A DNA stretch of 64,000 nt from Guillardia theta CCMP2712 (GCF_000315625.1 NW_005434574.1:50797-114796); one strand, 5' to 3'. Positions 15,407-38,860 are shown, numbered from the stretch's first letter. The notes: a model not told the origin generated them from the letters alone. Translations and numbers: made by a program.

Positions 15407-16153
15407 ATGCCAGCGGCGGTGCAGGCGCAGGCTTCATGCTCGTCGGTCGAGGAGGTCGGGTCAACGGGAGTCGGAGCCCTCACGATCGACTTCATCATCC
15501 TCGCTGCCGCCTCCTTCATCTTCGTCTACAAGCTCTCTGAGGCTGCCAACAAGAAGGTCGCCTACCTCTGCATCTACATCTGTGGCATCTCCGCCATCGC
15601 ATACTATGCGATGCTGGCGGGCCAGGGCTGGAGTGCAGGAACTACCTGCAGGCAGTTCTTCTATGCTCGCTACATTGACTGGATCCTTACCTGGCCCCTG
15701 ATCACCATCCTCCTCGCTCTCATCGCAGGATGCGAGTGGACCCCCGTCCTTGGCGCCATCGGAGGACAAGTCGTGCAGGTGTTTGCTCAGTACATGGCGT
15801 CAGTGTCTGTGCTGGACACAGTGAAGTGGTTCTGGTTCCTCATCGAGATCTGCGGGCTCATGTTCCTGGTCTTCCACGTTACCCGCATCTTCAAGGCAAC
15901 AGCCGAGAACAAGGGAGGAGAGGCTGCGGTCCTGTACAACAAGGTCGCCTGGACCACTGTGATCGTTTGGATCTGCTACCCGATCCTCTGGCTGTTTGCT
16001 GATGGATTTTCTTCCTTCACCGTCTCCTTTGAGGTCACCATGTACGCTATCCTCGATCTGATCAACAAGGTGCTCCTGTGCTTTATGGTCGTTTCGGCTC
16101 AAGACTCCATTGGCAACGACGACAACACAGCCGGAACTCGTGAATATGTTTGA
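15407..16153 (+). CDS. Microbial (type 1) rhodopsin, 248 aa, intronless
   Basis: Seven hydrophobic segments. Helix C YARYIDWILTWPL, helix F VWICYPILW, helix G YAILDLINKV with the Schiff-base Lys (codon 16067-16069). Confidence 0.95.
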   Translation: MPAAVQAQASCSSVEEVGSTGVGALTIDFIILAAASFIFVYKLSEAANKKVAYLCIYICGISAIAYYAMLAGQGWSAGTTCRQFFYARYIDWILTWPLITILLALIAGCEWTPVLGAIGGQVVQVFAQYMASVSVLDTVKWFWFLIEICGLMFLVFHVTRIFKATAENKGGEAAVLYNKVAWTTVIVWICYPILWLFADGFSSFTVSFEVTMYAILDLINKVLLCFMVVSAQDSIGNDDNTAGTREYV

Positions 16154-16690
16154 AACCAATCAGAGGCAGTTTGATTAGCAATACATGGCTATTCATAACG
16201 TGTGCCTTCTCTTGTCTCTTCTCCCTCCTCACATCTCGTTCTCATCTATCAAAGGCAATGTAGAGATTGCTGCTTTCGTCACGAGATATCCACGGATGTC
16301 ATTGCAAAGTGACTTTCCGTTGAGAATGCTCGAGAAACCGTTGCGAGATGGTAACAAGTGCTATCAAAGATCATCATCGTAATCATGATACCTCTACCAA
16401 CGCTGGTCTCCTTGTACTTCACTTCAGACCCTGAGAACTTCAGTCAGGTTCTTGTTCCTCTGTCCAAACACCCACACACATGCAGTCGATATTATCAGTG
16501 TGTGGTGGCCTTCCCTGCTCCTCCATCGCACATATTCTCTCGCTCTCACTTTCCTCTTGTTGAGAACACGATCCTTGCCTTTGAAACCTCGCAACGAAGA
16601 AGATAAGAATAACCATGTCCACATTTCAACATGTTTGTTCAATCTCAACATGTGTATTCACATTCAGTCTAAACATGTTTTTATTCACAT

Positions 16691-19600
16691 TCAATCTCTT
16701 GCACATACCGCGATCCTTTCAATCTCGTGCGAGTTTGCGACCACCGGCTCCTCGCTCGACCTCCTCCTGCAGCACTGACGCAGCTCCTTCACTTCCTGCG
16801 ACAGACTCGACAGACTCTGACGGATTTCTCGCAGCTGTTCCAACACCTCTCCTCCTCCTCCTCCTCCTCTTCCTTCCTCCTTCTCTTCCGTCCTGTCACG
16901 GGTTTGAGACCCTCGGTCGTGCGTGCTCTCAGGGCGATGGTTGATGTCTGATAAGATAAGCTTGAGGCCGAACATGATGGCGGCGGAGCAGTAGTCGTCG
17001 TTAGAGACCACGGGGATCAGTTGTCCGATCTTTCTCTCAGCGTACAGGTAGAGCTGCTCACTGAAGACAAGCTTGAAGGCATTGAGATCAAGGTCTCCCT
17101 TTTCATCGCAAATCTCTTTCTTCCTTGTGATAGCGTCATACTCGTCCATGGACAAGTCGATCTTGGGCCGGAACTGCATCATCTTCAACCCCTCTTTGAG
17201 CTCCAGGAAACTGACTGTCTGCGACCCGTCAACATCGAGGATGGAGAAGATGAGCTCTAGTCTGTTCATCAGCTCCTGGCGCGATACACACCCCATGAGC
17301 GAAGCGAGGAGAGGGTCGAGCGATAGCCGCGAGACGCTGAGATGCTCTGCTGGGATCGTCTTCTGGTCCTGCTCGTTGAGCATCCAGTTGGCTGACTTGA
17401 AGCTGTCGAGGAGGACGGCAAGGACTATGGGGAGGAGGGTGAAGGTAACGAGGACGATGAAGGAGACGAAGAAGAGGACAGTGGGAAATGATGGGCTGCC
17501 AATGCCTCCTGCAGTCATGATGTCGTACCATCCATCGACAGTCATCACCTGCCATGACGTCAACAACACAAGACTTCCAACAAGCAAGAGGTTGAGAGAT
17601 GCTGACCTGGAACATGGTCAAGGCTGCGGTCAAGAAGTCGCTGAAGAAGTAGCTGTTGTCTCGGAAGAAGCTCACGCCAAGGATGGAGTAGATGGCGAGA
17701 ATGACAAAGACGATGAGAAGGGCGTTGCAAACAGGGGCGATGGCTGCTGAAAGCGCGTTCACGATCCTCCTCGGCGAGTCGAGGCGCTTCAGGAGTCGCA
17801 TGACCTTGAAGGCGCGGATGAGTCGGAGGGTCTTCAAGGGGCCGAATTGCGCCGGGCCGAGGGACACGACGGAGAGAGTGACGACCAGGAAGTCGAACAG
17901 GTTCCAGCCGTCATACCAGAAGTTTGCAAACCAGTTTGACATCATGTTAATCGCCTGTGAACAAAGTGAGGACGAAGATACTGTGAGACTCATCATGGGG
18001 AAGAGGGGAGGAGGAGAGCAGAGGCAGCGGGAAGGAAGCGAGAGGTAGAAACTGGACGTGAGGACGGGGAAGAAAATTGACCAGTTCGACTATGAAGACA
18101 ACAGTGAAGGCGATGTCTATTTTGATGAAGGTTTTTCCGCTGCGATCCAAAAATCGACACGTTAAAGCTGAAGATCGGGAGAAGAGCAAAGGAGAGAATG
18201 ATTAGCAAGAGAGGGATGAGTATTTGTACAGAATCAGCAGCAAAGAGGGAGGGAGGGAGGGAGGGAGAGAGGGAGGGAGAGAGGGAGGGAGAGAGGGAGG
18301 GAGAGAGGGAGGGAGGGATGGAGGGAGGGAGAGTCAGAGTGGCAGGAAGGGAGAAGGAGCAGATAGGAGGAGGGGGAAGGTGAGAGGAGAGAAGAGAAAG
18401 AATGAGGGCAAGGGAAGAGATTTGAGGGGAGACAAACAATATGGAGAGAGCGGGAGCATAACAAACAAGAGAAGAATCATCATGACATCAAGCTGAGAGT
18501 TTCGTTCTGCTTACAGCTCAGTGTCCTCTTCATCGTTTGGTAGGATTTGAAACTGAACGGCCGTGGCGATGAAGTTCATGAGGATGAGAAGGGCCATGGA
18601 ATACTGCGCGTACTCTTTTACCAACCTCCTTCACCTCCAGCTCACTTCTCCTCCAGTCAAGATCAAGATGGTCGAATATCTCCACAACCATTCCAACGAA
18701 AGTTTCCTCATCAACATCGTTGTCGTCGTTTTTGTCATCGTCATCGTCATCGTCATCACATTCTCATCTACATCATCCTCGTCGTGGCCATCATTATCAT
18801 CATCAATATTGGCATCATCAACAACTCTATCAACCATGATTCACCTGGACATTCTTAGAGTTGTAATAGCCCGCAAGCCATGATTGCCATGAACGCAGCA
18901 ACATCGATCTTTTGTGACGGATCTTAGATGATTCAACATGTTTTTGCAGAACATTAATCCACTCTGTCTTCTCCTCCACTGTAGATGTTCGAAGGTAGTA
19001 AGTCTCGCCAACATTCAAGCCATTAGGTATTGTTGCAATCATAAACTCTGTCGAGCTGGTTGAGCTCAATGTGAGATCGCAGAGCTTCAAAACAACAACA
19101 TAGAACTAGAAGATTTCAAACTCACATTGAAAAGTTTGAATCCGATTTCTCATCTTCTCTTCCATTGGACCCCTTAAATGATGGTTCTGCTGTAAGGCCG
19201 TTCTTGCAAGATCCCAGGTATTTTTCGCTTCTCTTCCTCAACACCTTCTCCACTTTCACGTTCGCAATCCTTGTCAGTTCTCCATTGCTCCTGTCAACCA
19301 GCAACATCTATGAACATCACAACCACCACTTATCTGAATCATCACCGTGCAATCTCATTGCGCCCGTTGTCACATATCTCAACAATCTCATGGAGTGGTA
19401 TCACATCGACCACTTGTTTGTCGTTGTTCCTGGCAGCGAAGAACATGCTGTCTTTTGTAAGCACAACTCTCCTCTCCTTCCAGTGCCCATGTCTGTATTT
19501 CTCGACATTCTGACACAAACACAGTCAGTGAAAATGTTCTGATAGACAGCTGCAGCAACCGATTCTTTGATCCTGTACATCGCCGCCGGCATCTGCTGCA

Positions 19601-20170
19601 CAGTTTTCGAAGGATTTGCCAAGGCAGCGAACTCTTCGATGTCGACCTCAAGCTCATTGCTGTCGCAAGGCACATCTGAGGGCAAGCCAGCAAACATGGC
19701 CTTCTCCTGGTTGAAGGTGAACGATTCAACTCGAGGACGAGCCCACCGCTGCTCCCCTAAACTTCATCCTCGTGAGAATGATGTGATAGTCACGGAACAG
19801 CCATCTCTTTGATCAAGGGTTGCTTGACCTCCTCAAAGATTTCCAGCAGCTTGTCCTGACTGGACAAAATTCAATGCATGTTGAGCATGTCCCTCCAGCC
19901 AAACATTTCCATCATCTTCACCAACTCCCTTTACCTACAGTCTTCCAAGCACTTACCAGTAACTTCCCTCGCATCTAACGCCCTTTTCTCTTTTCCTTTG
20001 CTTCATGAAGTCTGCGGCTCTCTAACACATGTCTAGAACACATCTCTCCTTCTCTCATTCACAAGGAACTTGAAGTCTGCTCAAGATGCTTTCGACATCA
20101 CAATATGCTTCTCTCCCTCTTCACCCGCTGGCTCTCACGCTCTCTGAACAGTTCAAGTCTCTGCATCTTC
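16691..20170 (-). CDS. Single-repeat (6TM) voltage-gated cation channel with N-terminal PH domain and C-terminal EF-hand/coiled coil; multi-exon, start approximate
   Basis: PH domain: HWKERRVVLTKDSMFF...VDVIPLHEI...GETYYLRTSTVEEKTEWINVL. S3 DGWNLFDFLVV; S4 LKTLRLIRAFKVMRLLKR; pore TMFQVMTVDGWYDIM; S6 LFFVSFIVLVTFTLLPIVLAVLLDSF; EF-hand DVDGSQTVSFLE. Confidence 0.9.
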
Positions 20171-20279
20171 TGACATCTTGTCTTCTCCTCCCAACTTCCG
20201 CCTAACCCTGCTTCCTCCTCTCGTCCCTGCGACACCACATGATCATTTTTTTCTTTCTCATGATACTACCGTACGAAAA

Positions 20280-21248: not shown

Positions 21249-21710
21249 ATGCGGTTAACGGCTATTCTTTGGCTCTTCATCACGTACTGTGGCCGTGTAG
21301 AATCATTGGGCTCCATTCAAAGCTGTTGCCAATGCCCTTCTTTCACGTACTTTTTCAACACCCAATTCGACTCCAGCTGTAGTGGTTGCAATAACAACTT
21401 GTATAACTGCTTCTGCAACCCCGGCACCTATTCGGACACGCTTTCTTCGTGTGCCGCCTGTCAGAATTGCGGGGTTGGGCAGTATGAAGCGTCGACCTGC
21501 AGCTCTTTTTATGACAGGTCTTGCGTGACTTGCTCGACTGCGGCGTGTGCTGCAGGCACCTACAAATCGCAATCGTGCGCTGACGGCAATCAGCCTTTTG
21601 ACAAGAAATGTACGGTTTGTTCATCCTGTTCACGGGGCCAATACATGGTCACTGATTGCCAGTATGGATCCGAAACTAACAACCGTGTCTGTGCACTCTG
21701 CACGATCTGA
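21249..21710 (+). CDS. Segment A of giant Cys-rich surface protein: signal peptide plus TNFR-like Cys repeats, cut off at the inversion breakpoint
   Basis: MRLTAILWLFITYCGRVES signal; repeats such as CQNCGVGQYEASTCSSFYDRSC. Stops mid-repeat at ...NNRVCALCTI* (TGA 21708-21710). Confidence 0.85.
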   Translation: MRLTAILWLFITYCGRVESLGSIQSCCQCPSFTYFFNTQFDSSCSGCNNNLYNCFCNPGTYSDTLSSCAACQNCGVGQYEASTCSSFYDRSCVTCSTAACAAGTYKSQSCADGNQPFDKKCTVCSSCSRGQYMVTDCQYGSETNNRVCALCTI

Positions 21711-24700
21711 TCGATACGCTGCCAGTAAACTGCGTCGTCATTGTCACTGGGCAATTAACGCAGGGTTCGAAGCTCCTGACTGACTTGTAAGTGCCAGCGG
21801 AGCAGTTGGTGCAGTTGTAGAAGTTGCTGCCGTATTGGCCCAGCGGGCAGAAGTCCAGCTCTGCCAGCCAGCCGTATCTGCAAGTGCAATTATCCGAAGA
21901 GATAGAGCCGGCAAGACTGTAGGAGTTGTGCGGGCAGGGATTGACGCTGGTGCCGTTCGGACAGTAGAAGTTTGGCGGGCAGAGGACGCAGGCGATTCCG
22001 ACTTGAAAGTAGCCCGGGAGGCAAAGGCACTGCGACAGAAGGATCGATCCGCGTGGAGAGCTGGAAAACTGCGGGCAGCGCAGAAAGAAGTCGCCACCGG
22101 GGCAGTAGGTCGCATTGGCACACTGGTTGCAGCCATCAGCGCCATTGCCGTAGTAGCCCGGATTGCAGGTGCAGTCGGTTGCTTCTATCGTACGATTCGT
22201 CGTCTTAGTGGAAGAGTGTGGAGTGCAAGGGATGCAAGGGGTTGAAGCAGCGTAATCGGGCTGGTAAGTATCCATGCTGCAAACTTCGCACGGCTTGCCC
22301 TGCGGCGAATCTGCAGTCTTGAACTTGCCAGGAACGCAGGCAACGCAGACGCCTAGTGACTGGTTGTAGTAGCCGGGATCGCAGGAGCAGGACGATATCT
22401 GCGTAGAACCGTTGGTGTTGCTATGCGAATGGTTAGGGCAGGGCAGGCAGGCGCCAATCACGGCTATGTCAGGATTGTACGTGCTGGCAGGGCAATTCTG
22501 GCACGACTTCAACGCAATATCGTAGTAGGTGCCGGAAGGACAGGGCAGGCAGTATCCAAGCACGTCGGAATAGCTGCGGTAGTAGCCAGGAACGCAGCTG
22601 CATTCGTAGCTCCCGGTAGCGCTCTTGGCGTAGGTAAAGCAGGGCTTGCAAGTGGTAGCCGCTACAGCGCCGATCTGTGCGGAAAACGTGTCGGAAGGAC
22701 AGGGCGTACAGGCGTTGTCGGATATTTGATCCTTGTAGTAGCCTTTAGAGCAGGGAATGCAGGTTTTGGATCCGCCGGCAATCAAAGGCTCGTAACCAAC
22801 CTGGCAAAGGCAGCTGGAAATCAGACTGGATCCGTTCGCCAGTGTTGTCGTTAGCGCCGGACATGGCAGGCAATCATCGATCGTGACGGAAGCTGTCTTT
22901 TCCATGTAGAATCCGACGGCGCAGGCAACGCAGGGCCCTTTCCCTTGGTAGTTCTTGTAGTATCCGGATTGGCAGGCCGCGCAGGCAACTCCGTCGCTGT
23001 TAGCAGTGTATCCTTCCTTGCATCTGCAGGCCAGAACGTTCACCGAAGAGCTCGGCGCTATCGAATTGGAAGGGCAGGGTAAACAGCTGGCAACGCTGGC
23101 AGATAGCGTGGTAATGGAGTAGGTGTCAGCAGGACAATCCTTGCAGGCTTCCGTCCCGTTTCCGTATCGTCCAAGTCCGCAGCTTACGCAATCAACGCCT
23201 ATCTTCTGGAAGCCGGAATCACACTTGCAGTCTTCCAACTTAAAAGCTCCGGGTATGGAAGTGGAATGCAGCGGGCAGCTGCTGCATTGAATGACGCTGG
23301 TAGCGCCTATCGCGGAACTGTAAGTGTTGGCAGGGCAGAGGGTGCAGTCAGACGAAGCGACGAAATTCTTGTACTTTCCGGCAGCGCACGGGACGCATCC
23401 GTTGGAACCATTGAAACTGGTGTAGCCGGCTACGCACAGGCAGTCTTCGATCCTGGAAGAGCCAGCAATGGAAGCGGTGAAAGTGGGACAGGGCTTGCAG
23501 GCCTTGTCTAACGCATAGGCTTCCGAATAGTAGTTTTCAGGACAGGGAGCGCAGGCGTAATCGCCAAGGTTGATTTTGTTCGTCCCAGGCTCGCAGGGGG
23601 CGCAGTAAACGTTGCTGTTTGGTGCTTGCGTGATCGTTGTTTCGCTGTGCCTGTAGCCGGGAAGGCAGAGACAGGAGCCGAAGCTGGAAGAGCCGCGACT
23701 AGATGTGGAATTGGAAGGACAGAGCTGGCATACAGTGGATTGCGTTACATCGGAATAAGTCCCTACAGCACAACTTTCGCAGACGCTGGAAGAAGAAGCG
23801 CCGACAACCTTCGAAAAAGTGCCAAGCGGGCAGGGAAGGCAGCGTGAAGAGCTGATAGCAGCAGTCTCCGATTGGTAGGTTCCGGCTGGGCAGAGCGTAC
23901 AGTTTCCACTGCCAGCACTGTTCTTGTAAGATCCAGCGGCACAAGGCAGGCAGTCAGCGCCGAAATAGCCCTGCTTGCAGATACACAGCGAAGCATCAGT
24001 GCTTCCATCCCCGATGGCGAACTTACCGGCACCGCAGACAGTGCATTCGCTGTTGCCAATCGCTGGCTTGAACGTTCCTGGTAAGCAGGGCTGGCAGCTG
24101 CCGTCGACCAGCAAGAAGTATCCCGCCAGACAGACGCATTCTGAAGCTGACTTGGAGCTGTAGATCGCTGTAGTCTTCGAAGCAGGGCACGAAGCGCAGA
24201 AGGTAAGACCAGCAGAAGGATTGTAAGAACCGAGCTGGCATTGACTGCATGAAACATAGCCCGTTCCTTCATATCCGACGCTGCAGAGACAGTCAGTCTT
24301 CGCTTCGCTACCTTGCATGAAAGTTATCGCGTTGGCAGCGCAAGGCGTGCAGTTTCCGTTGCCGACAAAATCTTTGTACTTGCCAATCGGGCAGGCAGAG
24401 CATCCGGAAGCTGCGCTCCAGCCGAATCCCTTGTCACACTGGCAGTCTGTCGAAGCGTTGCTTCCGCTGCTGGAAACAGAGCCGCTGGGGCAGGGAGAGC
24501 AAAACTTCAAGCTGTTAAGGTAAGAGTTCGGCGGACAGACAGAGCATGTAAGGTTCTGAATAAAGGGCAGTATTACAAAGTCACCAACATAGACGCTTCC
24601 GTATTCGGCCTGCAGCGCAACAAACCCCCTCCCTCCCATTACTTGCAGCAAAGCGTCAGTAAGCGACTTCTGATTGCCAAGAATCGCAATCCTCCCTCCA

Positions 24701-27700
24701 GCGCCGCCGCCGCCAGTCCTGATCGACTTATCCGCATTCCCGCCATTGCACTGTATCAGGCCCGTCACCGTCACGTACGGCGCTGAAAGCAGCACGCTTC
24801 CGCCGCTCCCTCCCCCTCCCAGCCTGATCGCATCGACAGAATTGTACAGGCTACTATCCCCGCCGTTGGCAAGCAGCGACCCGCCGATCAGGATGCTTTC
24901 GAAGGATGATATCGTCAAAGAACCACCGCCCGCGCCACCATCGTTGGAAGAAGGAGCAGGAAGATCGCAGGTCCCACCACCCCCGCCGCCGCTGCCAAGA
25001 ACGCTGCTGGCAGACCAATCACTGTAGATATCCAGCGCCCCGTAAGCAGACAGCGCAGGAAACGACCCGTCTCCTCCCCTCCCGCCATAGCTGCCACCAG
25101 CCCCGCCATACCAACAAGCTGTAGCGGCCGGCCCACCTCCCCTACCGGACCCTGCTTGAATCGGGGATGATAGATTCGCGCTGCCGCCCTTCCCGCCCCT
25201 GCCGCTGACGTCGATGGTGGCGTTGATGACTACGGCTTGGACGGAGTGAAGGACCAGCGGATAGCTGCCAGAAACCGCCACTATGACGTTCTTCCCCAGT
25301 AGCAAGGAGGAGAAGTAGATCTGGCAGCTTTCGTTCAGGATCTGGCCCGGCAGCACGTGTTCGGAATTGACGATGAAGGAAAGGCTGCAGACGTCAGTGT
25401 CGATGGTGACAATGCCGGAAGAAAGTTCCAGATAGTTGAAACCCAGATAGCCTACGTCGCAGGTGCAATTCGTCCTTCCGGTTGAAGAATAGCTGTTGGC
25501 AGGGCAGGCGATGCAATCGTTGCTGGCAAGGCTGTGGTAGGTGTTGGCAGGGCAGGGGAAGCAGGTGTAGCTGTTCAAGCGTCCGTAGCCCGGCGGACAG
25601 AAGCACTGGTTGATTGAAGTCGATCCGATGCTGGAAGTCATGCCTGCTGGACAGCGATCGCATATTCCGGACGCGTTCAGGTAGAAATTTGCGTTGCAGG
25701 AGCATTCGTAGCTCCCGTACGTGTTGGTGCAGACGGAGTTCAATCCGCAGCGCTGGCCGGAAAGGCATTCGTTGATGTCATAGCAGACAGAAGCGTTCCA
25801 GTCGAACTGGAAGCCGTTGCCGCAATAAATGCAGCTGTTGATCGTCTGGCTGAAGATCCCTTCCGTGCACTTACAGAACGTGCTGTTTGCATTCGAAACG
25901 CTGTTTCCAGGGCACTTCTTGCATATCGGCAGTCCAGTCTTTGCGTCAATCCCCGCCGTGTAGTAGTTGATCTGGCAGACGCAATCGTTGATGGTTTTTG
26001 CAGGGCCAACTGTTGTCATCGTTTGCGGACAGGCCTTCAACTCCGTCCTGCACTGCCGGCATTGGCCGTATACATCTTTGTAGTATCCAACAGGGCAAAG
26101 GCAGAGCTCCAGATCCGTCGCACCTTCAAAGGAATGCAGCCCGGCAGGGCAGAGCAAGGGAGAGGCACTGTAGCACGGCATGCAGTAGCCGTCAATGGGT
26201 AGAAGGTAGGAGCCTGTCCCGCACTGGCAGTCGGTGATATCTGTCGAGCCCATCGCACTGTAAGATCCGACGGGGCATTTCTGGCAGCTTCCAGAGCCCC
26301 TTTCGGACTTGTAAGTGTTGAAAGGGCAGGGAGCGCAGCCGTCCTGATAGGGATAGTAGCCCTTCCGGCAAAGGCAGGTCCTGTTAAGAAAGCTGGTATA
26401 GACGACTTCCATGTTATTCGGGCATTGGATGCAGGCGTCCAGCGTGCTGTTGGTAGTCAGAAGGTAGTCCGGGCAGGGCAGACAAGATCCGTTGGCCACG
26501 CCGTAGTAGCCAGAGCCGCAGGCGCAGTCGCTGAAAGAAGTGCTGCCGGAAAAGTAGGTGGAATACGGCACCGGGCAGGATTCGCAGCCGTAATTTCCGA
26601 CGGTGCTCTTGAACTTGCCAACAGGGCAATACTGGCAGATCTGGCTGAAGGCGATGCCGTCAATGGTTACAGGGATGGATACCGGCGTCATCTGATAGCC
26701 CTTTGCACAGGTGCAGTTCAGTATTGAAGTGCTGGCGATATCCATAGTCACCATGTTGAACGGACAGCGCGTGCAGTAGTCGGGACCGGCAGTGCTTTTG
26801 AAGTATCCATCATCGCAGGGGATACAGATGCCACCAGCCGCGCCGTAATAGCCGGCAGGGCAGTAGCAATTGACGACACTGGAAGAGCCGATGCCGGAAA
26901 CCATCCGATAAGGGCAGCTTTTGCACTTGAAGAGCCCGGCAACGTCACTGTATGTGCTTTCAGGGCATTGGACGATGTAGTAGCCGCCAACAGACAGCGT
27001 TGAAAGCAACCTTCTGCCACCGGGTGAAGCGGACTGATAGAAGCCAGGCGCAGCAACGCAGTCGGTGGATGAATTACTCCCCTCCTTACTGACAGTGTTT
27101 GGCGAACAGGAAAGGCAGGATAGCAGCCCGGCAACATCGCTGTAATGATCGGGCGGGCAGGGGTAGCAGGGGACGCTTCCGTTAAGCGAAAAGAAGCCCG
27201 GCCCGCAAAGGCAGCTACCAATCGAAACCGAACCCGTGCCGGAAGTGACGCCAGGGTACGGGCAGGCGGTGCAGTCCTGATTGCCGCTGCCATGATGGAT
27301 TTGAACTGGTTGAAGGGGCAAGCGCTGCAGGTGCGCGGTGCGCTAAGGTAGAATCCAGCCTTGCAGACGCAGGCATCGATGGAAACGCTCCCAATCGCGC
27401 TTACAGAGTTGGAAAAGCAAGAAACACAGGAGCCAGCAGACCAATACTTGTTTTCAGGGCATTGGATGCAATCCACCTTGCCTGCCGCCCCTGCGTTGTA
27501 GTAGCCGGCGACGCACTTGCAATCCGTTATGGCGACAGAAGCGGTCTGATTCGCGAAGGAATTGGCTGGGCACTGCGTGCATTGGAAGGAGCCGGTTATG
27601 TTCTTGTATTCGCCGGCAGGACAGGGCTCGCATTGGTTGCTTCCCGTCCCCCTGTAGCCAACAAGACAGAAGCAGGCGGATACATCAACAGACCCTTGCT

Positions 27701-30700
27701 TGATCGTCGAAGCATGGTCAGGGCATTGGGTGCAAAGCGCGTTCTTTGCCACGTCCTTGTACTTTCCAATCGCGCAGGCAGTGCAGGCAGTGCCAGAGCC
27801 GCCGTATCCCCTGTCGCAGAAGCAGGAATCGATGGCAACGCTGCGCTGGACGCTGGTCGACCCCGTTGGGCATGTTTTGCATATCGACCCGTCGTAGTAA
27901 GTGCCAGGTTTGCAGATAGAGCAGCTTCCATCGGTGTTGGACGAAAAGCCCTGCGCGCAGGCGCAATCGTAGATCGTTATAGAGCCTTCGATGCTGTCAG
28001 AATTCGCCGGACAGTCGTTGCAAGGCCCGGGCCCAAAGTCCTTGTACGTCCCCCTTGGACAGATGGTGCAGGCTTGGCCGTCAGAACCGTAATAGCCCGC
28101 GTTACAGAAGCACTGTTCCAAGCTGTAAGAGCCCGACGACGCAGTGTGCGTGTTGGCAGGGCAGAGCGTGCAGGGCTGGTAGATCGAAGGCTTGTAGTAT
28201 CCGACGGAGCAACCGACGCAGCTGGAACCGATCAGCTCTTTGCCTAGCGGACAGGAACAGGAAGTAGAAGCGTTCGCCGACGTAAGGCCAGAAGGGCAAG
28301 GCAGGCAGGAACTGCCACGCTGGTAAGTCCCTTCCTTGCAGGGGGTGCAGATGCCGTCGACTGGGATGTATCCTTCTATGCAGGTGCATTGAAGCGCGCT
28401 GGTAGAGCCGGCGGAACTTAACAGGCCCTTCGGACAAGAGAAAAGGAACGTCAGACCAACCATACAGCTCTGATTCCTGCTGTGCGTGGTGGTATTTTCA
28501 GGGCAGGAGCAGATGACGTACGTTTCATTGACGATGGTGGTGATGTAGGTCGAAGGACAGGGGCTTTGCTGGTAGACGCAGGTGCCGTTGACATCTAGAA
28601 AGCCATCCACACAAACGCATTCAAGCGACTGCGAAGAAGGTGAATACTGCAGCGTTCCGTTGCAAGAACCGCGGGTGTAAACGCAGGCAAGGTCGCAGGA
28701 ATAATATCTTCCAGTCCCGCTTCCAACGATCTTGCATCGATCCGTCGCCGAACTTCGGACGTATCCGGTGTAGACGACCGGCAGCCCTTCCGGATTCGAA
28801 GCGGGCGGCAGTTCGTAGGGCGTGTAGCTCTTGTTGCAGACGCAGTAGGAGCTGCCGACGGAAGACGTGCTGTTTCCAGGGCAGGAAAGGCAGGCATTAT
28901 CCGATGTGCTGTTCAAGGAGTACGTGCCCGCCGGACAGCGCGTGCAGGGGACATTTCCGTTTGGATTGCCGTAGTAGCCAGAAGGGCAGTAGCAGGAAAG
29001 GAAATAGCCCTGCTTTGGAGCGTAATAGATCACGATGTTGGTCTTGAAAGCATAGCCCTCTGTCACACAGAACAGTGTCTGACAGGAAGCAAGCGAAGGG
29101 CTAAGTGCAGGTGCAGATTTTCCACTGGGACAGACCTTGCAGAACGATATGTTTCCAGCCGTCAGATCGACGCCGGTGGAATAAGTGTCTGCTGGACAGG
29201 GATTGCAGACTGTCTGCCCATCACCCACGTAGCCGGCCATGCAGCGACATTTCCGTTCGAACGCGTAAGTTGAAATGTTCACTGGTGGGCTGTAGGGATC
29301 ATACTGCAATATCTGCGTGGTAGTGTAGTTGCCGTCAATCGGAACGCTGACATCCATGCTGCATTGCGGTATGTAGCAATCGATCAGCGAAGTCGAGCCA
29401 GGCTGCGAAACTTGGCCGAAAGGGCAGTCGTGGCAGAAATCGGGCGTTACTTCGTAGAAGGAAAGCACCAGAAGGCTTTCGCTTGCAAGGATGATCGAAC
29501 GCTTCTTGATGTCAGGGATGAACTTGCTGAAAGTTACGCCATTGACCCGTTTGAAGTCTTTTACCTGTTTACTCTTCGCGTCTACAAGCTGCAATCTGCC
29601 GTCAGTGGAAGCTATCAAGATCTGATCCTGCGTCGGACTGACTATCAGACCCAAGACATTGGAAAAGGTATAATATGCCGTGTTCTGGTAGAAGGGGCTA
29701 AGGAACGCTTCGCTCCCCACCGCCGCAACCGATCCTGGAATGTTGACAAGAAAAAGGGAGTTGGAAGACATCGCCCATACGGTTTCCGTCTTGTGCGCGT
29801 AAGCAATGCAGACAGGGGTGAAGGAGACAGTGAACGTTACAACTTTGAAATTGGAAAGATCCACCTTGCGGATTCCATTCAGGCCCGTCTCTAGAACTAC
29901 CATGTAGGCGCTGTCGTAGCTGACGTCGGCGGCAAAGGCGTTGCTGAATGAAGCCGCGGATCCAATCCCGTCCGTGCTGGTAGTGCTGCTGGAAGTGCCA
30001 ATGACGATCGTCTTGATGTAGGACTTTAGGCTTGTCATCGATACAAAAGAGCCCTTTTCGAACACGAATGCGTAGTTGCTGTCCTTGGTGATCTGGATCA
30101 GCTTCGGATTGGCGTAGGAAAGAACGTTGTTGTTGACGTCCCTGCTGACGGCCCAACCCACCTGCCGCTCTTTGTCAAGGATGTAGAGCACGGAAGAAGT
30201 TGAATCTTCCACCCTGAAGAAGTGGCTCTGGTTGAAGACGATGGACGAAGTATAACCCTGGATGACCACCAGCGGGGAATAGGTGATGGTCGTGTCCTGT
30301 CCGAACTTGCTGGTTCCGTATTGCTCCGGTCCGCAGCTGGGATTCAGCGTGCTGGAATTCAGGTAGTCGGAAAGATAGCTGATGCAGGACGCACTTCCGG
30401 GCTGGACGGAGTAGTAGCCGTTGGGACAGGGCTGGCAACCGATCGTGCTGGTAGAAAGCGTGTAATCAAGGTACTTTCCAACCGGACACAGATCACAGAA
30501 CGACTGGCCTGCCGTCAAAGACCAGGATCCAAGCGGACAGTACTGGCAGGGCGATTCGCCAAGAACGTTCTTGTATTTGCCAGCAGGACAGACGGAACAG
30601 GACGATCCAGAAGGTCCGGTGTAGCCAATGGGACAGACGCATTGGCTGCTGGATGTTGCGCCGGGCAGAGAAGTAGCGTTTTCCGGGCAGTAATTGCAGG

Positions 30701-30863
30701 CCTGGATGCCAATCGTGCTCTTGTAAGTGCCAGGGCTGCAGGGGCTACAATCCCTTCCGGAATAAAGCAGTTCAAATTCCGTCAGGCCCCACCACGCCCT
30801 GCTACTCCTGCCGAACGCCGTGTCCTTGCTGACGTTGATCTTCAGGTCCATCGTCAGAGAGAG
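21711..30863 (-). CDS. Segment B (inverted, ~3,050 codons, one frameshift near 27290): GCC2/GCC3 ephrin-receptor-like Cys repeats, NHL-like beta-propeller, Ca-binding EGF, Gly-rich domain
   Basis: ORFs 26748..30851 and 21676..27321 are one repeat protein in two frames. Dozens of CxxCPxGxYK...CxxCP...GSxSxxxCxC units. Propeller ~29450-30280 (DGIGSAASFSNAFAADVS...IRKVDL); DINECLSGQRCGLNSVCTNTYGSYECSC ~25680-25780; Gly-rich ~24600-25230; RRLL motif ~27010. No signal peptide or natural C-terminus of its own. Confidence 0.85.
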
Positions 30864-33800
30864 TCAGCAGCTGCGTCTGCGCGCCAGGATTGACCTTCAG
30901 CTTGACAGATCTATGCGTGCCTTGTCCGATAGCGACCTACAAGACCAACTTCAGTCTGTACGGCTGCCAGTCCTGCCCGCGCTTCTTCACTACGCCTTAC
31001 AACGCAAGCACCAGCTTTACAGAATGCACCTGCCTGCCTACCTTTGAAAGAACGGCACAGACAGTCTGCACCTGTCCGAAAGGAAGCGATTTACAAGCTG
31101 AAAGCTGCAAGCTCTGTCCTGTTGGTACGTACAAGAATACGTCATCGTTGGACTCTTGCTATCCCTGCCCGCGCTTCTTCAGCACTGCTTCCAATGGCAG
31201 CACCAGCTTCAACAACTGCAGCTGCGAAGCTACGTTCTACAGGGGAGCGGAGACTGTTTGCACTTGCGCGCTAGGCAAGACGCTTCACGGCGAAATCTGC
31301 GTCAGTTGCGACGTCGACACCTACAAAGACTTCATCGGATACGATGCCTGTATCAACTGCCCGCCGAATTCTATCACGCTCTCCAACCAATCTTCATCCT
31401 TTGATCAGTGTCTTGCTATCGCTGGCTATTACCGTGACGGAAGGAACTTTTCGCAGTGCCCAAAAGCCACCTACAAGCCCGTTGTCGGGAATATCAACTG
31501 TACAAACTGCCCGATTGGCTCTACCACCTTTTTCACTGGCTCTATCCCTGCGACAAGCTGCGTATCGGATCTTGGATACTACCAGAAAAGCGACGGAAGC
31601 TTCACCTTCTGTGCTATTGGTACTTATTCCGATGTAATCAACACGACGACCTGCAAGACCTGCTTCCCTGGCTCTACCACTGCCAGCACAACGGCTACGG
31701 CTTCCAGTCTCTGCATTGCCGACCTTGGCTACTACGGCAGCAGCGGCGTTTTCACGCAGTGTGCGATTGGCACTTACAGCGACCAGATCGGGCTTACTGT
31801 TTGCAAGTCATGCGCTGCTGGTCAGACTACCGGACAGATCGGCTCGAATAACTACCGTCAATGCGGCTTCCAGTGCGTCCCTGGCACTTACAGCTCTAAC
31901 GGTGTGATGACAAGCCTGGAAGACTGCGGTGCTATGACTGGCAATTCGCTCTGCACGGGCGGGCAGTCGAGCTATTACAGTTCTCGTGCTTTTCCTTGGA
32001 GCTACGCAGTGGATAACAATCTTGGCAACTTCATGCATACTGCTTGCGTCGCAACGCGCTATTGGTGGATAGATTTTGGCAGCAGCAAGGACGTTCAGTC
32101 AGTAGTGATGTGGAGTAGAAGCAATTGCTGTTGGGAGCGCGATAGTGGTGATAGGATCTATGTTGGCAACTCCCTGACGCCTACCAGCAACAAACTGTGC
32201 GGGATAATGGGACTTTTTCCAAGTGGAAATTACAACAACACTGTCAACTGCCAGTTCTCCGGCCGCTATCTGTTTGTTTACTATATCGGATACAATATAC
32301 GACCCGACTACTGCATGAACTGGGCGGAAATCAACATCCAGGGCTGTCAGAACTGTCCACTGGGCTATTTCCAAGCACAATCAGGCAGAACGAACTGTAG
32401 CGCCTGTGCGATCGGCTCTTACGCTGACGCGCCTGGATCTTCATCTTGCACGGCCTGTCCAACGTTTGCTACCAACGATATTCTGTCCAGCGTTACCATC
32501 GAAGATTGCTTCTGCACGAAGAACTTCGTTTGGTTGAACCATCAGTGCGTTTGTCCGAAAGGAATGCATCTTTCAAGTTATCAGAACTGCACGGATTGTC
32601 CTGCTGGCACGTACAAAGACAGCTTCAGTCTTTCCGAATGCCAAGTGTGCCCTGCCGATACCTATTCCAGTGCTGGCGCTTCGTTCTGTTCGTCATGCCC
32701 GGCGCAGACGCGAAGCTCTAACTCTTCCAGTTCCATCTGCGACTGTGTTTCCGGCTGCGGATTCGGTTCTTACTGGAACAGTTCGCTTGGGCAGTGCGTT
32801 TTCTGCGAAGCTGGCAAGCTAAGCCCTGCGTATGGCTTGGCAAACAACGGGCAATGCGACAACGCCAGCAGCTGCGCGGCCAACACTTACGCTTCTAACG
32901 GGGTATGTATACCCTGCCCTGATTCCAGGCCTTATTCGCCTGCTGGCTCTACCAACGAATGCTTCTGCACGGCTGACCAATGCCTGCTAACAGCCTGCAA
33001 CTTCGACGAATATGCAGAGCCCGGCTACTGTGTCTCTTGTCCTGACTCGAAGCATGTGCCCTGGCCCAGATATGCAAGCTTCGGACCTGACCAACTGCCA
33101 ATGCAAGAACATATCGAAAACCTGTCCGTTTGATTCATACATGATTGAAGAGATTAATATGACTTCCAGCATTCCATTCACCAAGCTCAGTGATAACGAA
33201 AACATCTACTGGAAATTTACCAACAAAGGCGACGATCAGACAGCCTACAGTGTCAACGTGACAGTGCCAACGCTGGTCACAATGCTGATCATTGCAGGCG
33301 GCGGTTCTGGCGGTGACGCAGTGGGAAAGTACGTAGCTAGATCGCAAAGTGTCGGCGGTGGTGGAGCCGGTGGTGCGATACGCGCTACTGACGTCTGGCT
33401 GCCTGTTGGTCAGTATACCGTGAAGGTTGGCAGGGGAGGAGTGAATGGAAATGGCATAGATAGCTCTTTAATCAGCGCCAATGCTAGCTACATAGCTATT
33501 GGTGGCGGAATGGGCGGATGGTACGGTGTGAATGGCCAATTCGGTGGCTCTGGTGGCGGTGCCGGTGGAAGTTCAAGTGGTGGCGGAGGTGTTTCTGGAC
33601 AAGGCTATCGTGGCACTCCCAGTAGCGGATTCGGCACAAGCGGAGGAGGTGGCGGCGCCGGTGGTTCTGGGCCTGCAGCGTATTCTAGTGCATACAATTC
33701 CAAACTTCCAGGCCCTTGTATCTATTCAGACATTACTGGAACTTTGCTGCCTTACGCGGCCGGAGGTAACGGTGGATCAGATGGCGATTTGGTCATATCT

Positions 33801-35342
33801 TGGAAGAATACAGTCAGCATGTGCGGCATCGGTGGCGTTGGTGGTTGGTCCGGTCACATAACTGGAACGAACGGAGCTCCGGATACTGGATCTGGCGGTG
33901 GTGGCGGTGGATTGTCAGGAGCAGTTGTCGCAGCGCCGAACATTAACGATCCGGGCGATACGCCTGAAGCATCAGGTAACGGAGGATCTGGCATTGTTAT
34001 CATTCGTTCGGTATACTTCCGGTATTGTCAAACTTGTCCTGCTTCAAAGCCTAACGCTCCAGTCGGATCTACTGACCCATGCCACTGCCAGCGCTGTCCG
34101 CTTGATTCATTCGACGTTGGTGATACCTGCGTGAAGCGCTGCCCGGCCAATTCGAAGAAGCTGCCTACCGAATCTTACTTCAACTTTTCATGCGCCGCTT
34201 ATCCTGGATTCTACCGCAATGGAAGCGACTTCCAGCGCTGTCCGATTGCAACCTACAAAGATACATATGCCAACACGCCCTGCCTTGCCTGCCCGCTTGG
34301 CACGTATTCCAACATCGAACAGAGCACTTTCTGTAGGGATTGTCCAGTTGGTTACTACACAGTTTCAACGGGCTCTTCGGTGTGTGTTTCCTGTCCCACC
34401 TATTTCACTACAGTCGGCAACGGAAGCAAGAGCTACGACTACTGCGTTTGTCAACCTGGCTTTTCCCGTAAGGATTATGCAAGTTGCGCCTGTAGTCCGG
34501 GCTATACATTCGATGGCAATTCAAGCTGCAAAACTTGTGCTGTCGGATACTACAAAGATCACATTGGTTTTGATAACTGTACTGCCTGCGGTCAATACTT
34601 CAATACTGCGGGACAGGGCAGTCCCAGCTTTGATAACTGCACCTGCATTTCGAACTTCGTGAAAGAAGGAGATCAATGTCTTTGTGATATTAGATTCTAT
34701 CACCAGAGCGGTGCTACATTTTGTACGGTCTGCGCAGGTGGAAGCTACAAGAATGTCAAAAGCTTAGCAAACTGCTCTATTTGCGGAGCTGGAAAGTATT
34801 CCGACAGTGGAGCTTCAGTCTGTATCAATTGCCCTATCAACACGTTGAACGGCGGGAATGGATCGGGTCTATGCAGCTGCGCTTCAGGTTGTGGATATGG
34901 CTCTTACTGGGATATATCTTCCAGTCAGTGTGTCATTTGCCCTGTTGGAAAGGTCAGCCCTGCTTACGGAATAGCTAACAGCGGTACGTGCGATACCAGC
35001 AGCGTCTGTGCCGCAAATACATACTTGTCTGCAGGAATCTGTATCGCCTGCCCTTCTGATAAACCGTATTCGCCTGCTGGCTCTACGAACAAATGCTTCT
35101 GTACTGAAAATCAGTGTATCGAAACGTTTTGCAACGCCTACCAATACTATAATGGAACTTCTAGCCAGTGCCTGATGTGCGCACAGGGATTCATGCCGTT
35201 CACTTTTAGCCCTTTCGTTAATTTCCACTCTTCTTTTCGAGAAAGTTTTTTTGGGGTGGCGTGTGAATTCAAACAAGTTTTCAACGGCAGCAAGAGATAC
35301 CTCCAAAGAGTACCAGTGCAGTTTAGTTATCATTTCTGCTAG
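30864..35342 (+). CDS. Segment C (~1,490 codons, one frameshift near 33062): Cys repeats, F-type lectin domain, Gly-rich domain; 3' end apparently truncated
   Basis: Frame opens mid-repeat (SSCVCAPGL) with no ATG or signal peptide. F-type lectin ~31950-32345 (AVDNN..FMHT..WWIDFG..RSNCCWER..IYVGN..GRYLFV..WAEI). Gly-rich ~33250-34010 (IIAGGGSGG..GGGGAGG..YTVKVGRGG..GGSGIVIIR). Cys pattern ends near 35195 without a TM anchor. Confidence 0.85.
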
Positions 35343-35639
35343 GCCTTTACATGTATTTTAACTTTCATTTCAGAGGGTTGAAATGTTTTCAACATCGTAC
35401 ACGCCCGACTCATGTCTCCCCTACACGCCGGCACGTAGCACCAAAGCTGCTCCTCCAACGATGCCGCTGTAAGACCATCCGCTGCTGTAGCCAGCATCAG
35501 ATCTCAGCATGCAAGGCTTTGTTAGGTTTGAAGCTCTCTAGTCAGCACAGTTTGAGACCTGAGACCGCTAGGTTCGTGGTGATGCGTTCGGTGACAACAC
35601 AGTGTGCAGCAATGGCGTTGTGAGATCCATGGTTCAAAA

Positions 35640-37070
35640 GGTTATTATGAAGAACAAGATGATGAAAACATGAGGTTTGAATCCAGTGTAGGAGATCGCT
35701 TGTCATTTTGACTTGACACCAACCTTATGGCAGAATAATCATAAGATACTTCCCTGTGATGAATGATTTTTGAATTGCATATTTTCCACATGCGATGCCT
35801 TGAAGATTTGTTTGATGGAGATTGCATCATTTTGCAGATCCACGTAATTAGTCAAGCTCACTTGTTATATTAGACATCAAGCATTGCATAGATTGTTTCA
35901 CAAGATTTCTGCATGCATTTCGCCTACTGCAGTTAGGATGTTTGATTGCATGTAAACACTGATGCCGCCAGAGGCAATCAAGACGTCTTAAGCCTTGAAC
36001 ACCGTCGAGAGTCTCCACTTCTCAGATTTGCAGAGTGTGTTGATTTCTTGATGCGTGGGATTAGTTTTGAGCGTTCATCTAGCTGTGATGTCGGACATTT
36101 GAACCGTCAACACAGTATGCACACATGTATTATTTGTTCTATTGTGAAATAAAGTGATCTCAGTCTTGCATTCGAGGCCATGCTAAAGAGCATTTCTGTA
36201 TCTTCTTTCATTTCACATAAATGCAGAATGCATGCAGGGGTTGAATGATGATGAAAACATCGCTTCCCCTGTAGACCATTCCGACTCACTGTAAGCTTGG
36301 GATCGACATCAAAAGTGGTAGTGATCTGATTGCAGAAATCTTTATACATTCATGAGGTATCATTCTTTGCAATAATCTCATTACAATGACAACCGCAAGT
36401 AGCATCAAATACATGTTCAATGGTCAGCACAATAAGCCTCACATTGGTTTCTTCGTTGTGCCTGCATAGCAGAGATACATCAAAAAGTTGCAAATAAACC
36501 TAATTATGCACAATGTATGCTTGTAGCTCTAGTAAGCCACATTGATTGCTGTAGGATTCTCATCCTGTGGTTGAAACAGACTTTCCATGTCGCCACAGCT
36601 ACGTGGAGCATGTTGATCCTTGAGCATCTTGAATGCATGCTCAAGCAGAAATAATGTGAAGATGTTGCTTTTGAGGATCTGAACTGCAATTACTTGAATT
36701 TTTCTAGCATATTTGCAAGATTGGAGTGCATGAAAGCACCTCATTTGCAAACTGATGGTGCAGCATTGTAAACCATACTTCCTCTCTGAATCCTCATACA
36801 TACGGCTCTCATGCTTGAAACAACGAATAAGAGAGCAGAAAAGGTGTATTCATCTTTTTCAATGTATTCTAAAGACATCTTCATTCCTAGACAGCTTTCT
36901 CTGTCATGCAGTCATGTAAGAGAAGCGGAATTCAAAACTTTCTTTCAAAGTCAGAGACTAAGAAAAGGTCTTAGTCTATCTACATGGATACATTAGACGA
37001 TTAAATTCTCATCCACATTCAAGCAGCAATAGATTCGAAGCCTCTCACCATGATGACTTGTCGTTGCATG
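35640..37070 (-). pseudogene. AT-rich, stop-riddled region; possible decayed gene (one PPR-like fragment)
   Basis: Only short frames; IEKDEYTFSALL near 36830-36865 resembles a PPR helix start. No coherent splice model. Confidence 0.2.
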
Positions 37071-37099
37071 CGGGTGAAGGATCAAGCAGCCATCTCTTG

Positions 37100-38860
37100 C
37101 TTGCCCAGGGAGGGGGGATTTGGGGAGAGGAGAGTGGAGATAGCACCCTACCCCCTATTTCCCAATTTCAAACTCTTGAATCAAAGGGTAGTTTTGTATT
37201 CTTTGCTAGCTACCCACCCCGCCTTTCGTAAAGGTGATGAAGGGGAACCGGGGGTATTGGCGTGGTGAGCTCAAACGGCAATCGAAATGCCTTCTTTTCC
37301 ATTAGCACCCCCACGTACCGTGATACAGTGAAATGCACGGGTATGAGAGAATCTTTCGGTCCTCTACCCCTCCAGACAAAGGAAGTCACTAGGGTGGAGG
37401 CTTATTCGAGACGCCTGTCGAAACCACTTTAAAAGAATAGTACAGACTGTACCAGAGGCACTTCATCCGTACATAGATGTGTACGATTGAAGCGCTGACT
37501 AAACAATTAAAATGAAGTGCTTCAAAAAGTAAGGCGGGGGACAGGGTACCACGCCAGTATAATTCAAATCACCCCACCCTACTTTATCCCTGTCTCACTA
37601 CCCCCCAGTAATAGAGCAAAAACCGGGGTAGCTGAATGGAAGTGTATATATGAACCCCTTCCCAAGGAGAAAAAAAAGACCAATTTTGCTAGAGCCTGCA
37701 TATGGCCTTGTGAACGGCATGGATAACACCGCAGTACAAGGATTTGTCGAATTTGAACGTCGGTTCGTGCAAAGCCCCTTATGGCTGTCCAAATAACACA
37801 TACAAAGAACCCGCTGGCAGCGGCTCAGCGGCTTGGCACCGTCCGCACGACGGGCGGGGCCCCGGCCCACTGCCGGACTCAAGCCCAGGCTCCGCCGGGG
37901 CCTCCGGGAGTCCGGCCGCCGCCGCGTGACAGTCGTGACGGTCCGACGGTCGGAGGCTCCCGCCCGGGGCCGGCGCCGGGGCCGCTCACGCCGCCAAGAG
38001 TTAGTGGTTTCGGAAGTTCAGACTTGGCCACGGGTGACATTAAACTAGGCTGAAACTTCGATATTCGAAAGGCTTTGCAGGAAGTTTATTGAATATTTAT
38101 TGTTCTGTGATTATGCACCGGGAGAGTTTATTGTTTAATTTATATTCTCACTTTACTTCGACTTGTTGCATGATAAGCTGTGGTTTGCTGTCAGGAATCT
38201 TCTCCTCCCCATACACTTGCAACGTTTCATTTTAAATAAGTTTTTGTAAGCCTCCAAAGACCCCAAAGATAGTTTTTTCAATATATTTGTTTGCCCCTGG
38301 TTCTGAAAGAGTGTATTCCTGGGGCTTTTCATCCTAGTTTTGAAATATAAATATACAAATATGTTTTAAAGATCCTCTTCCCCCGAGATACCCTGGCCTC
38401 CTACACCACCGTTGAGAGACTCCACCCTACGAATCAAATGCACCACCCCTATCGTTCTTGCTCTAGTGCACCACCCTTCATGTACCCCACTGCCTCATCT
38501 ATTTACATATTCTATCAAAACTAAATTTGATCAAGTCGGGGTCTTCTTCGAAATTTTATCCCCACGACTACCCTTATCTCCAACGGGAGGTGTACTGATA
38601 CCACCACCACCCCCTCTCTGTACCTCTCCTCAATACGCCCCCCCTTTCTATGATTAGGTACCACCAACCTCGTCCTCCTATGTTGGACTACCCCCTTGTT
38701 ATGATCTCCGTTCATTACCACCCCCTTCTCAACAAGAGAGCATCACTGAGTACCGGTACGTTTTATTATTTTCTGAACCCCTGCCTGCAGGCAAATTTGT
38801 GTAGTTGTAGGGGTACCTGATAGTACCCGTGGTGGCTTCACCCCCATTGTTGATCCAGAG
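37100..38860. promoter_or_regulatory. Intergenic block: GGGGT/ACCCC flank, GC-rich core (37810-38040), AT-rich spacer, ACCCC flank
   Basis: CGTGACAGTCGTGACGGT in the core; same composition as the other intergenic blocks. Confidence 0.45.

Follow-up and report, generated by a model that had tools for sequence, protein, structure and literature searches.

A one-off inversion with deletion as the best explanation for a strand-flipped, probably mirusvirus-derived giant Cys-repeat gene in Guillardia theta

Why should the central part of one giant gene lie on the opposite strand from its two ends? The question is raised by a 64,000-nucleotide stretch of the Guillardia theta CCMP2712 genome, hereafter the window (contig C100:50797-114796 of an 87.1 Mb assembly in 669 contigs, which was used for all own-genome comparisons and whose contigs are given C-numbers). 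Here, coding for a giant Cys-repeat protein runs on the plus strand to position 21710 (segment A), continues on the minus strand from 30863 to 21707 (segment B), and returns to the plus strand from 30864 (segment C). A preliminary description of this DNA had recognised the three-part anatomy and read it as a single gene with its centre inverted, either by a one-off inactivating event or as one state of a rearrangement system that switches or diversifies giant adhesins. The middle 9.15 kb of the gene is indeed inverted in the assembly, with breakpoints at 21707/30864, and we consider a one-off inversion accompanied by deletion, in a multiply broken and probably mirusvirus-derived gene, to be the best explanation (probability roughly 0.81).

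Inversion and loss of DNA within the gene

The earlier arrangement is preserved in a decayed copy on C17. There, C17:954268-954481 corresponds to window 21707-21956 in opposite orientation and is immediately adjoined by C17:954478-955334, the counterpart of window 30864-31779; the two matched pieces overlap by the 4-mer TCAG, and the junction reads in frame. Because this copy is collinear and in frame across B/C, the order found in the window is the derived state. Two pairs of short inverted sequences had been proposed as possible breakpoints, CTGA/TCAG (21707-21710 and 30864-30867) and ACGAT/ATCGT (21702-21706 and 30850-30854), and both occur at those coordinates. The B/C breakpoint deduced from the first pair was exactly right, and a one-off inactivating inversion within one giant Cys-rich gene is supported; the second pair is contradicted by the C17 copy, where the C part starts at TCAG, and was ruled out as a crossover pair.

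The A/B side is different. Frame compatibility had been claimed for both breakpoints, but while it holds for B/C it fails for A/B, where hundreds of codons are absent. In the paralogue on C114 (46% identical to segment A over its residues 138-255), the homologue of the end of A runs straight into sequence that is found in C138 about 408 codons before the homologue of the B start. About 870 codons separate the A-end and B-start homologues on C251, and in a metagenomic relative on Joint Genome Institute (JGI) contig Ga0645784_00247 the B-start homologue is preceded by 1,089 codons, versus 153 here. Judged from such relatives, which are 34-46% identical, about 400-900 codons would be missing between A and B. 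At the least, most of a 145-residue Cys-poor domain is gone, since B opens with its final 32 residues. Neither the window nor, at close identity, the rest of the genome holds the missing stretch, and no close intact relative of segment A turned up in the searches made for one. The stop codon of segment A (21710) is itself a product of the left junction. An ancestral A-B-C open reading frame (ORF) had been put at roughly 4,700 amino acids (aa); this figure is the sum of the surviving pieces, and the relatives point to a longer ancestor.

With the loss at most a few codons away from the inversion breakpoint, a single complex event would be the simplest account. We propose one episode of breakage and repair involving three ends (the end of A, the start of B, and B/C), in which 9.15 kb would have been inverted and roughly 1.2-2.8 kb between A and B lost. 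Registered on their shared 4-mer, the two junctions agree at only 7 of 40 flanking positions, fewer than the null mean of 10.4, and on that ground we see no recombination sites at the junctions. Nor can a working gene have had the 4-mer on its A side or its B-start side originally, since it puts a TGA in frame on both. The ends may have been joined via microhomology of no more than 2-3 nt (at most 3 and 2 nt of the 4-mer), or the 4-mer may have been duplicated through fill-in of a 4-nt staggered break, a process described for Drosophila inversions (PMC1885836). Similarly to those staggered-break/end-joining inversions (Ranz et al., PMC1885836), the event in the window involves no long inverted repeats and leaves a short inverted sequence at both breakpoints; it differs in that only 4 nt are shared, explicable by 2-3 nt microhomologies, and in its large deletion.

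The likely route of repair would be end joining with a hairpin/fold-back or with template switching, although the break might also have been made by a transposase. Palindromes with a one-base centre are present at both junctions, at the frameshift in B and at the 3' cut, with arms of 5 nt at the left junction, 4 nt at the right junction and the B frameshift, and 6 nt at the 3' cut (null for arms of at least 4 nt, 7%); those at the right junction and the 3' cut may be native coding sequence, the 3' window was picked post hoc, and the frameshift in C has none. Small insertions in other copies fall within such palindromes in nine of 12 cases (arms of at least 3 nt, null 27%), as they often do in the decayed copies on C17 and at C236:2650-3550, the latter of which has the same 5-mer inserted twice. 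The palindromes modestly favour hairpin or fold-back repair.

Further lesions and layout of the locus

The inversion is one of several lesions in this gene (Table 1). Neither B nor C is the single frame that it had been taken for, each being interrupted by a frameshift (at 27289-27293 in B, and of 7 nt at about 33091-33097 in C); introns were ruled out as the reason for the frame changes, the shifts being of 5 and 7 nt. Likewise, the stop at 35342 that had been read as the end of the gene sits 150 nt inside a terminal inverted repeat (TIR) element, after which Cys-repeat coding resumes. No Cys-rich ORF lies beyond segment C3 in the downstream part of the window, and the 3' end of the gene is lost. 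The TIR element has a 12-bp TIR and no long ORF, and at least 11 other full-length copies occur in the genome at 97-100% identity; as this makes at least 12 near-identical full copies, the element has been recently active. No target-site duplication was found in the nine copies checked, and CATG was rejected as one, the reading phase of the flanks fitting insertion without duplication.

The gene is a pseudogene, with several independent disabling lesions in a frame once under purifying selection. Its other close copies (on C17, C26, C181, C236, C480 and C209) are short fragments. Aligned fragment copies contain frame-breaking indels and show ratios of nonsynonymous to synonymous substitution (dN/dS) of 0.17-0.58 against the window gene, a pattern that fits divergence as functional genes under selection, with each inserted copy decaying later. 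The C181 copy of B (94%; L020:4550-4852, next to 28852) breaks off sharply in telomere-type CCCTAAA repeats with a 20-nt tandem array behind them, and contains an additional Cys module of about 254 nt that is absent from the window gene and from the JGI relative.

The preliminary description had asked whether paralogues also show strand flips inside their Cys-repeat frames. One does: a second paralogue, on C138, is split by a 5.7-kb flip inside its glycine-rich domain (C138:144027-149722), the plus-strand part of the domain stopping at query residue 133 (144027) and the remainder picking up at that residue on the minus strand (149722, a far junction placed from coordinates only), with no codons lost there. 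The 3' end of that gene lies on the minus strand between the two positions, and the gene has frameshifts too. Its flip occupies a different position from that in the window, and the junction sequence is unrelated. The other copies examined (C17, C26, C236, C480 and C209) are collinear. Such recurrence points to dead sequence being often rearranged in this genome, and not to a site-specific system. It is tempting to suppose that virus-derived giant Cys-repeat genes in this alga are inverted more often than other DNA through a mechanism dedicated to it, be this the breaking of endogenous viral DNA under host direction, a hairpin-forming transposase or a viral nuclease, with the one-base-centre palindromes and the two independent flips on C100 and C138 as its marks, but we think this improbable.

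Table 1. Segments, breakpoints and lesions of the giant Cys-repeat gene, in window coordinates
Feature	Position	Strand	Basis or remark
AT-rich stretch 5' of the start codon	21080..21248	+	seen in sequence
Segment A: 153 aa from the start codon, with hydrophobic leader and Cys repeats of TNFR type	21249..21710	+	PF00020 (TNFR_c6), E 2.5e-8
Left breakpoint: CTGA (21707-21710), central in an 11-nt palindrome with one-base centre	21703..21713	.	also site of the inferred codon loss
Segment B2: 1,860 codons, GCC2/GCC3 (Ephrin_rec_like) repeats, one EGF_CA and one glycine-rich domain	21707..27288	-	Pfam
B frameshift: about 5 extra nt inside a 9-nt palindrome	27289..27293	-	repeat spacing versus two relatives
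Segment B1: about 1,190 codons; domain remnant, repeats, Cys-poor propeller-like region, further repeats	27294..30863	-	
Right breakpoint: TCAG, native to the B/C junction	30864..30867	.	collinear copy C17:954478-954481
Segment C1: repeats and one F5/8-type C (galactose-binding-like) domain	30864..33090	+	Pfam
C frameshift: 7 extra nt, near-duplication of neighbouring bases	33091..33097	+	copies C17 and C26 are without the 7 nt
Segment C2: glycine-rich domain (PF21722) and repeats, broken by mobile element	33098..35191	+	
TIR element: 2,530 bp, non-coding	35192..37721	.	
Segment C3: about 34 more Cys-repeat codons, then cut into GC-rich DNA	37722..37824	+	

Tandem PF07699 repeats exceed the Pfam cut-off in B1, B2, C1 and C2 (182, 413, 167 and 68 bits, respectively), and more than 30 significant Ephrin_rec_like stretches were detected by Pfam alongside TNFR_c6, EGF_CA, F5/8-type C and Gly_rich_2 modules. 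No N gap lies near the left or right junction, and no repeats shared by both ends of the gene were found that could be flanking terminal repeats. The AT-rich DNA preceding the start codon is possibly the original (viral) promoter or intergenic sequence of the gene. In a Pfam scan of window ORFs the flanking genes are host genes. Also in the window are a microbial rhodopsin ORF (15407-16153, plus strand; PF01036, E 1e-31) and an ion-channel gene with introns (about 16690-20200, minus strand), the latter matching Ion_trans and EF-hand.

Relatives of the gene and its probable viral origin

Full-length collinear relatives were found only on JGI contig Ga0645784_00247 and, in the same genome, on C138, matching about 3,050 aa of B at 34-45% identity; B2 is collinear with the JGI relative at 38-44% identity. 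Genes lie densely on the JGI contig, where the giant Cys-repeat cluster adjoins the gene for a portal-like protein (Atlas 0.97). The contig also encodes a terminase-ATPase-like ORF (DNA_pack_N, E 0.069; TerL_ATPase clusters, 0.94) that terminates at a splice-donor-like AAG/GT, the type of end expected of the split terminases of mirusviruses (PMC12768974). Searches of PDB and PHROGs with the terminase ORF gave no match, and its single-sequence fold prediction, with a predicted local distance difference test (pLDDT) score of 42, was uninformative. On C138, 94% and 97% copies of the portal-like and terminase-like genes stand beside giant Cys genes. A TNFR-repeat gene lies upstream in a conserved tandem order on C114, C251 and the JGI contig, and G. 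theta is among the assemblies with clade E03 mirusvirus capsid genes (PMC10827195). A scan of viral contigs with a piece of B1 gave no match. We infer a viral origin for the window copy, which the preliminary description had not noticed, and regard the gene as most likely mirusvirus-derived; an origin from a Polinton-like virus (PMC12220804) was considered and dropped, the neighbours being portal- and terminase-like. On this view the gene, intronless and coding for a giant Cys-repeat protein that is secreted or sits at the surface, most likely arrived with a large, herpes-like DNA virus of the mirusvirus kind that became endogenised, and it now stands isolated between host genes, where it is decaying.

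When the locus is set beside the clade E03 mirusvirus elements endogenous to cryptophytes (Zhao et al., PMC10827195), the likeness lies in a shared likely host and in the collinear relatives beside portal-like and split-terminase-like genes, on the metagenome contig and on C138, whereas the window locus is a single stranded gene with no marker gene. GCC2/GCC3 (Ephrin_rec_like, PF07699) repeat proteins resemble the window gene in combining these repeats with TNFR_c6, EGF_CA, F5/8-type C and Gly_rich_2 modules; the window gene differs in being pseudogenised, in belonging to a virus-associated subfamily, and in having lost its 3' end together with any anchor.

Several related observations were made elsewhere. 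Terminase-like and portal-like genes occur at C138:17977-52495, C137:110814, C67:377493 and C29:328872, being intact on C138 beside a Cys ORF of 5,461 codons and decayed on C67 and C29. Cys-repeat frames of 3,200-5,600 codons without interruption are numerous on C43, C61, C78, C112, C138, C150, C277, C299 and C40, and are probably further virus-derived genes. In a gene-dense 64-kb metagenome contig, a Snf7 gene (L055:5926-6693), which represents a core mirusvirus function (PMC12768974), adjoins a giant Cys-repeat gene that is a more distant relative.

Weighing of alternatives and significance

Several points weigh against a one-off inversion with deletion in a mirusvirus-derived gene. The window contains no viral marker gene, and none of the ORFs on the viral contigs has a homologue in its flanks. 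The mirusvirus assignment of the related contig, likely although not proven, comes from its portal-like and terminase-like neighbours, while GCC2/GCC3 repeat proteins are common in cellular eukaryotes too. For want of a close intact relative of A, the estimated size of the loss depends on distant paralogues with variable modules. Finally, the junctions are known from the assembly, and misassembly is countered from their anatomy only. In an alternative account, the same one-off inversion and decay befell an ordinary host gene, either a retrocopy or a member of an intron-poor host family, with no viral ancestry. Such an account would agree with the lack of a viral marker in the window, with the host-gene flanks, with the occurrence of similar repeat proteins in many eukaryotes, and with one distant repeat-only relative among retroelements. 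It would also have to accommodate about 14 kb of intronless coding sequence amid split host genes, full-length collinear relatives confined to gene-dense contigs with portal/terminase-like genes, and the conserved tandem order with the upstream TNFR-repeat gene, and we judge it improbable. That the chromosome is in fact collinear A-B-C, and that the assembler made the flip and perhaps also the loss, is comparably improbable. Exact-protein look-ups of the window ORFs yielded no record from an independent assembly, and the few-kb inversion on C138 belongs to the same assembly; yet there is no gap and no misleading repeat at the junctions, which have 4 nt in common, both are base-precise against the C17 copy, and the left one has a one-base-centre palindrome like those of small insertions in other copies. 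Misassembly would need two independent chimeric joins as well as the loss of unique sequence.

The R64 shufflon, the Gin/G segment of phage Mu and Salmonella Hin are site-specific invertible switches, in which a segment within a surface-protein gene changes strand. A surface-protein gene segment has changed strand here too, and the second paralogue split by a flip (C138:144027 plus, 149722 minus) might suggest a programmed, reversible inversion of the same kind, switching or diversifying a giant adhesin. The absence from the window of long inverted sites and of a recombinase had already been remarked upon in the preliminary description. The former is borne out: no crossover site extends beyond the 4 nt, and inverted sites of tens of bp were not found. 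A Pfam scan of 20 window ORFs, confined to the window, detected no recombinase. Moreover, the exchange was not conservative, and the deletion at A/B nearly refutes a switch by itself. The strand opposite B holds short antisense frames only, with no alternative cassette, and neither orientation would yield a full product, given two frameshifts, a transposable element insertion and a 3' truncation; reversal would not restore a functional gene. The flip on C138, elsewhere in the gene and with an unrelated junction, and the collinear copies likewise speak against it. With a non-conservative event, no crossover sites and four further lesions, the proposed switching or diversification system finds no support, and we regard it as highly improbable. 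The presence of both orientations in reads, if true, would raise the importance of the locus greatly, but the anatomy makes that unlikely.

Read as a one-off inversion with deletion, the locus is a well-resolved example of the decay of an endogenised viral gene, bringing together an inversion with deletion, short templated insertions, a transposon and a truncation. In none of the literature searched did we see clusters of giant GCC2/GCC3 genes described as cargo of mirusviruses. The main value of the locus, although incidental, is that it links a family of intronless Cys-repeat ORFs of 3,000-5,600 codons in this genome to portal/terminase-bearing mirusvirus-like elements, a link for which we came across no earlier description, the giant Cys-repeat proteins being candidate attachment or decoy proteins.

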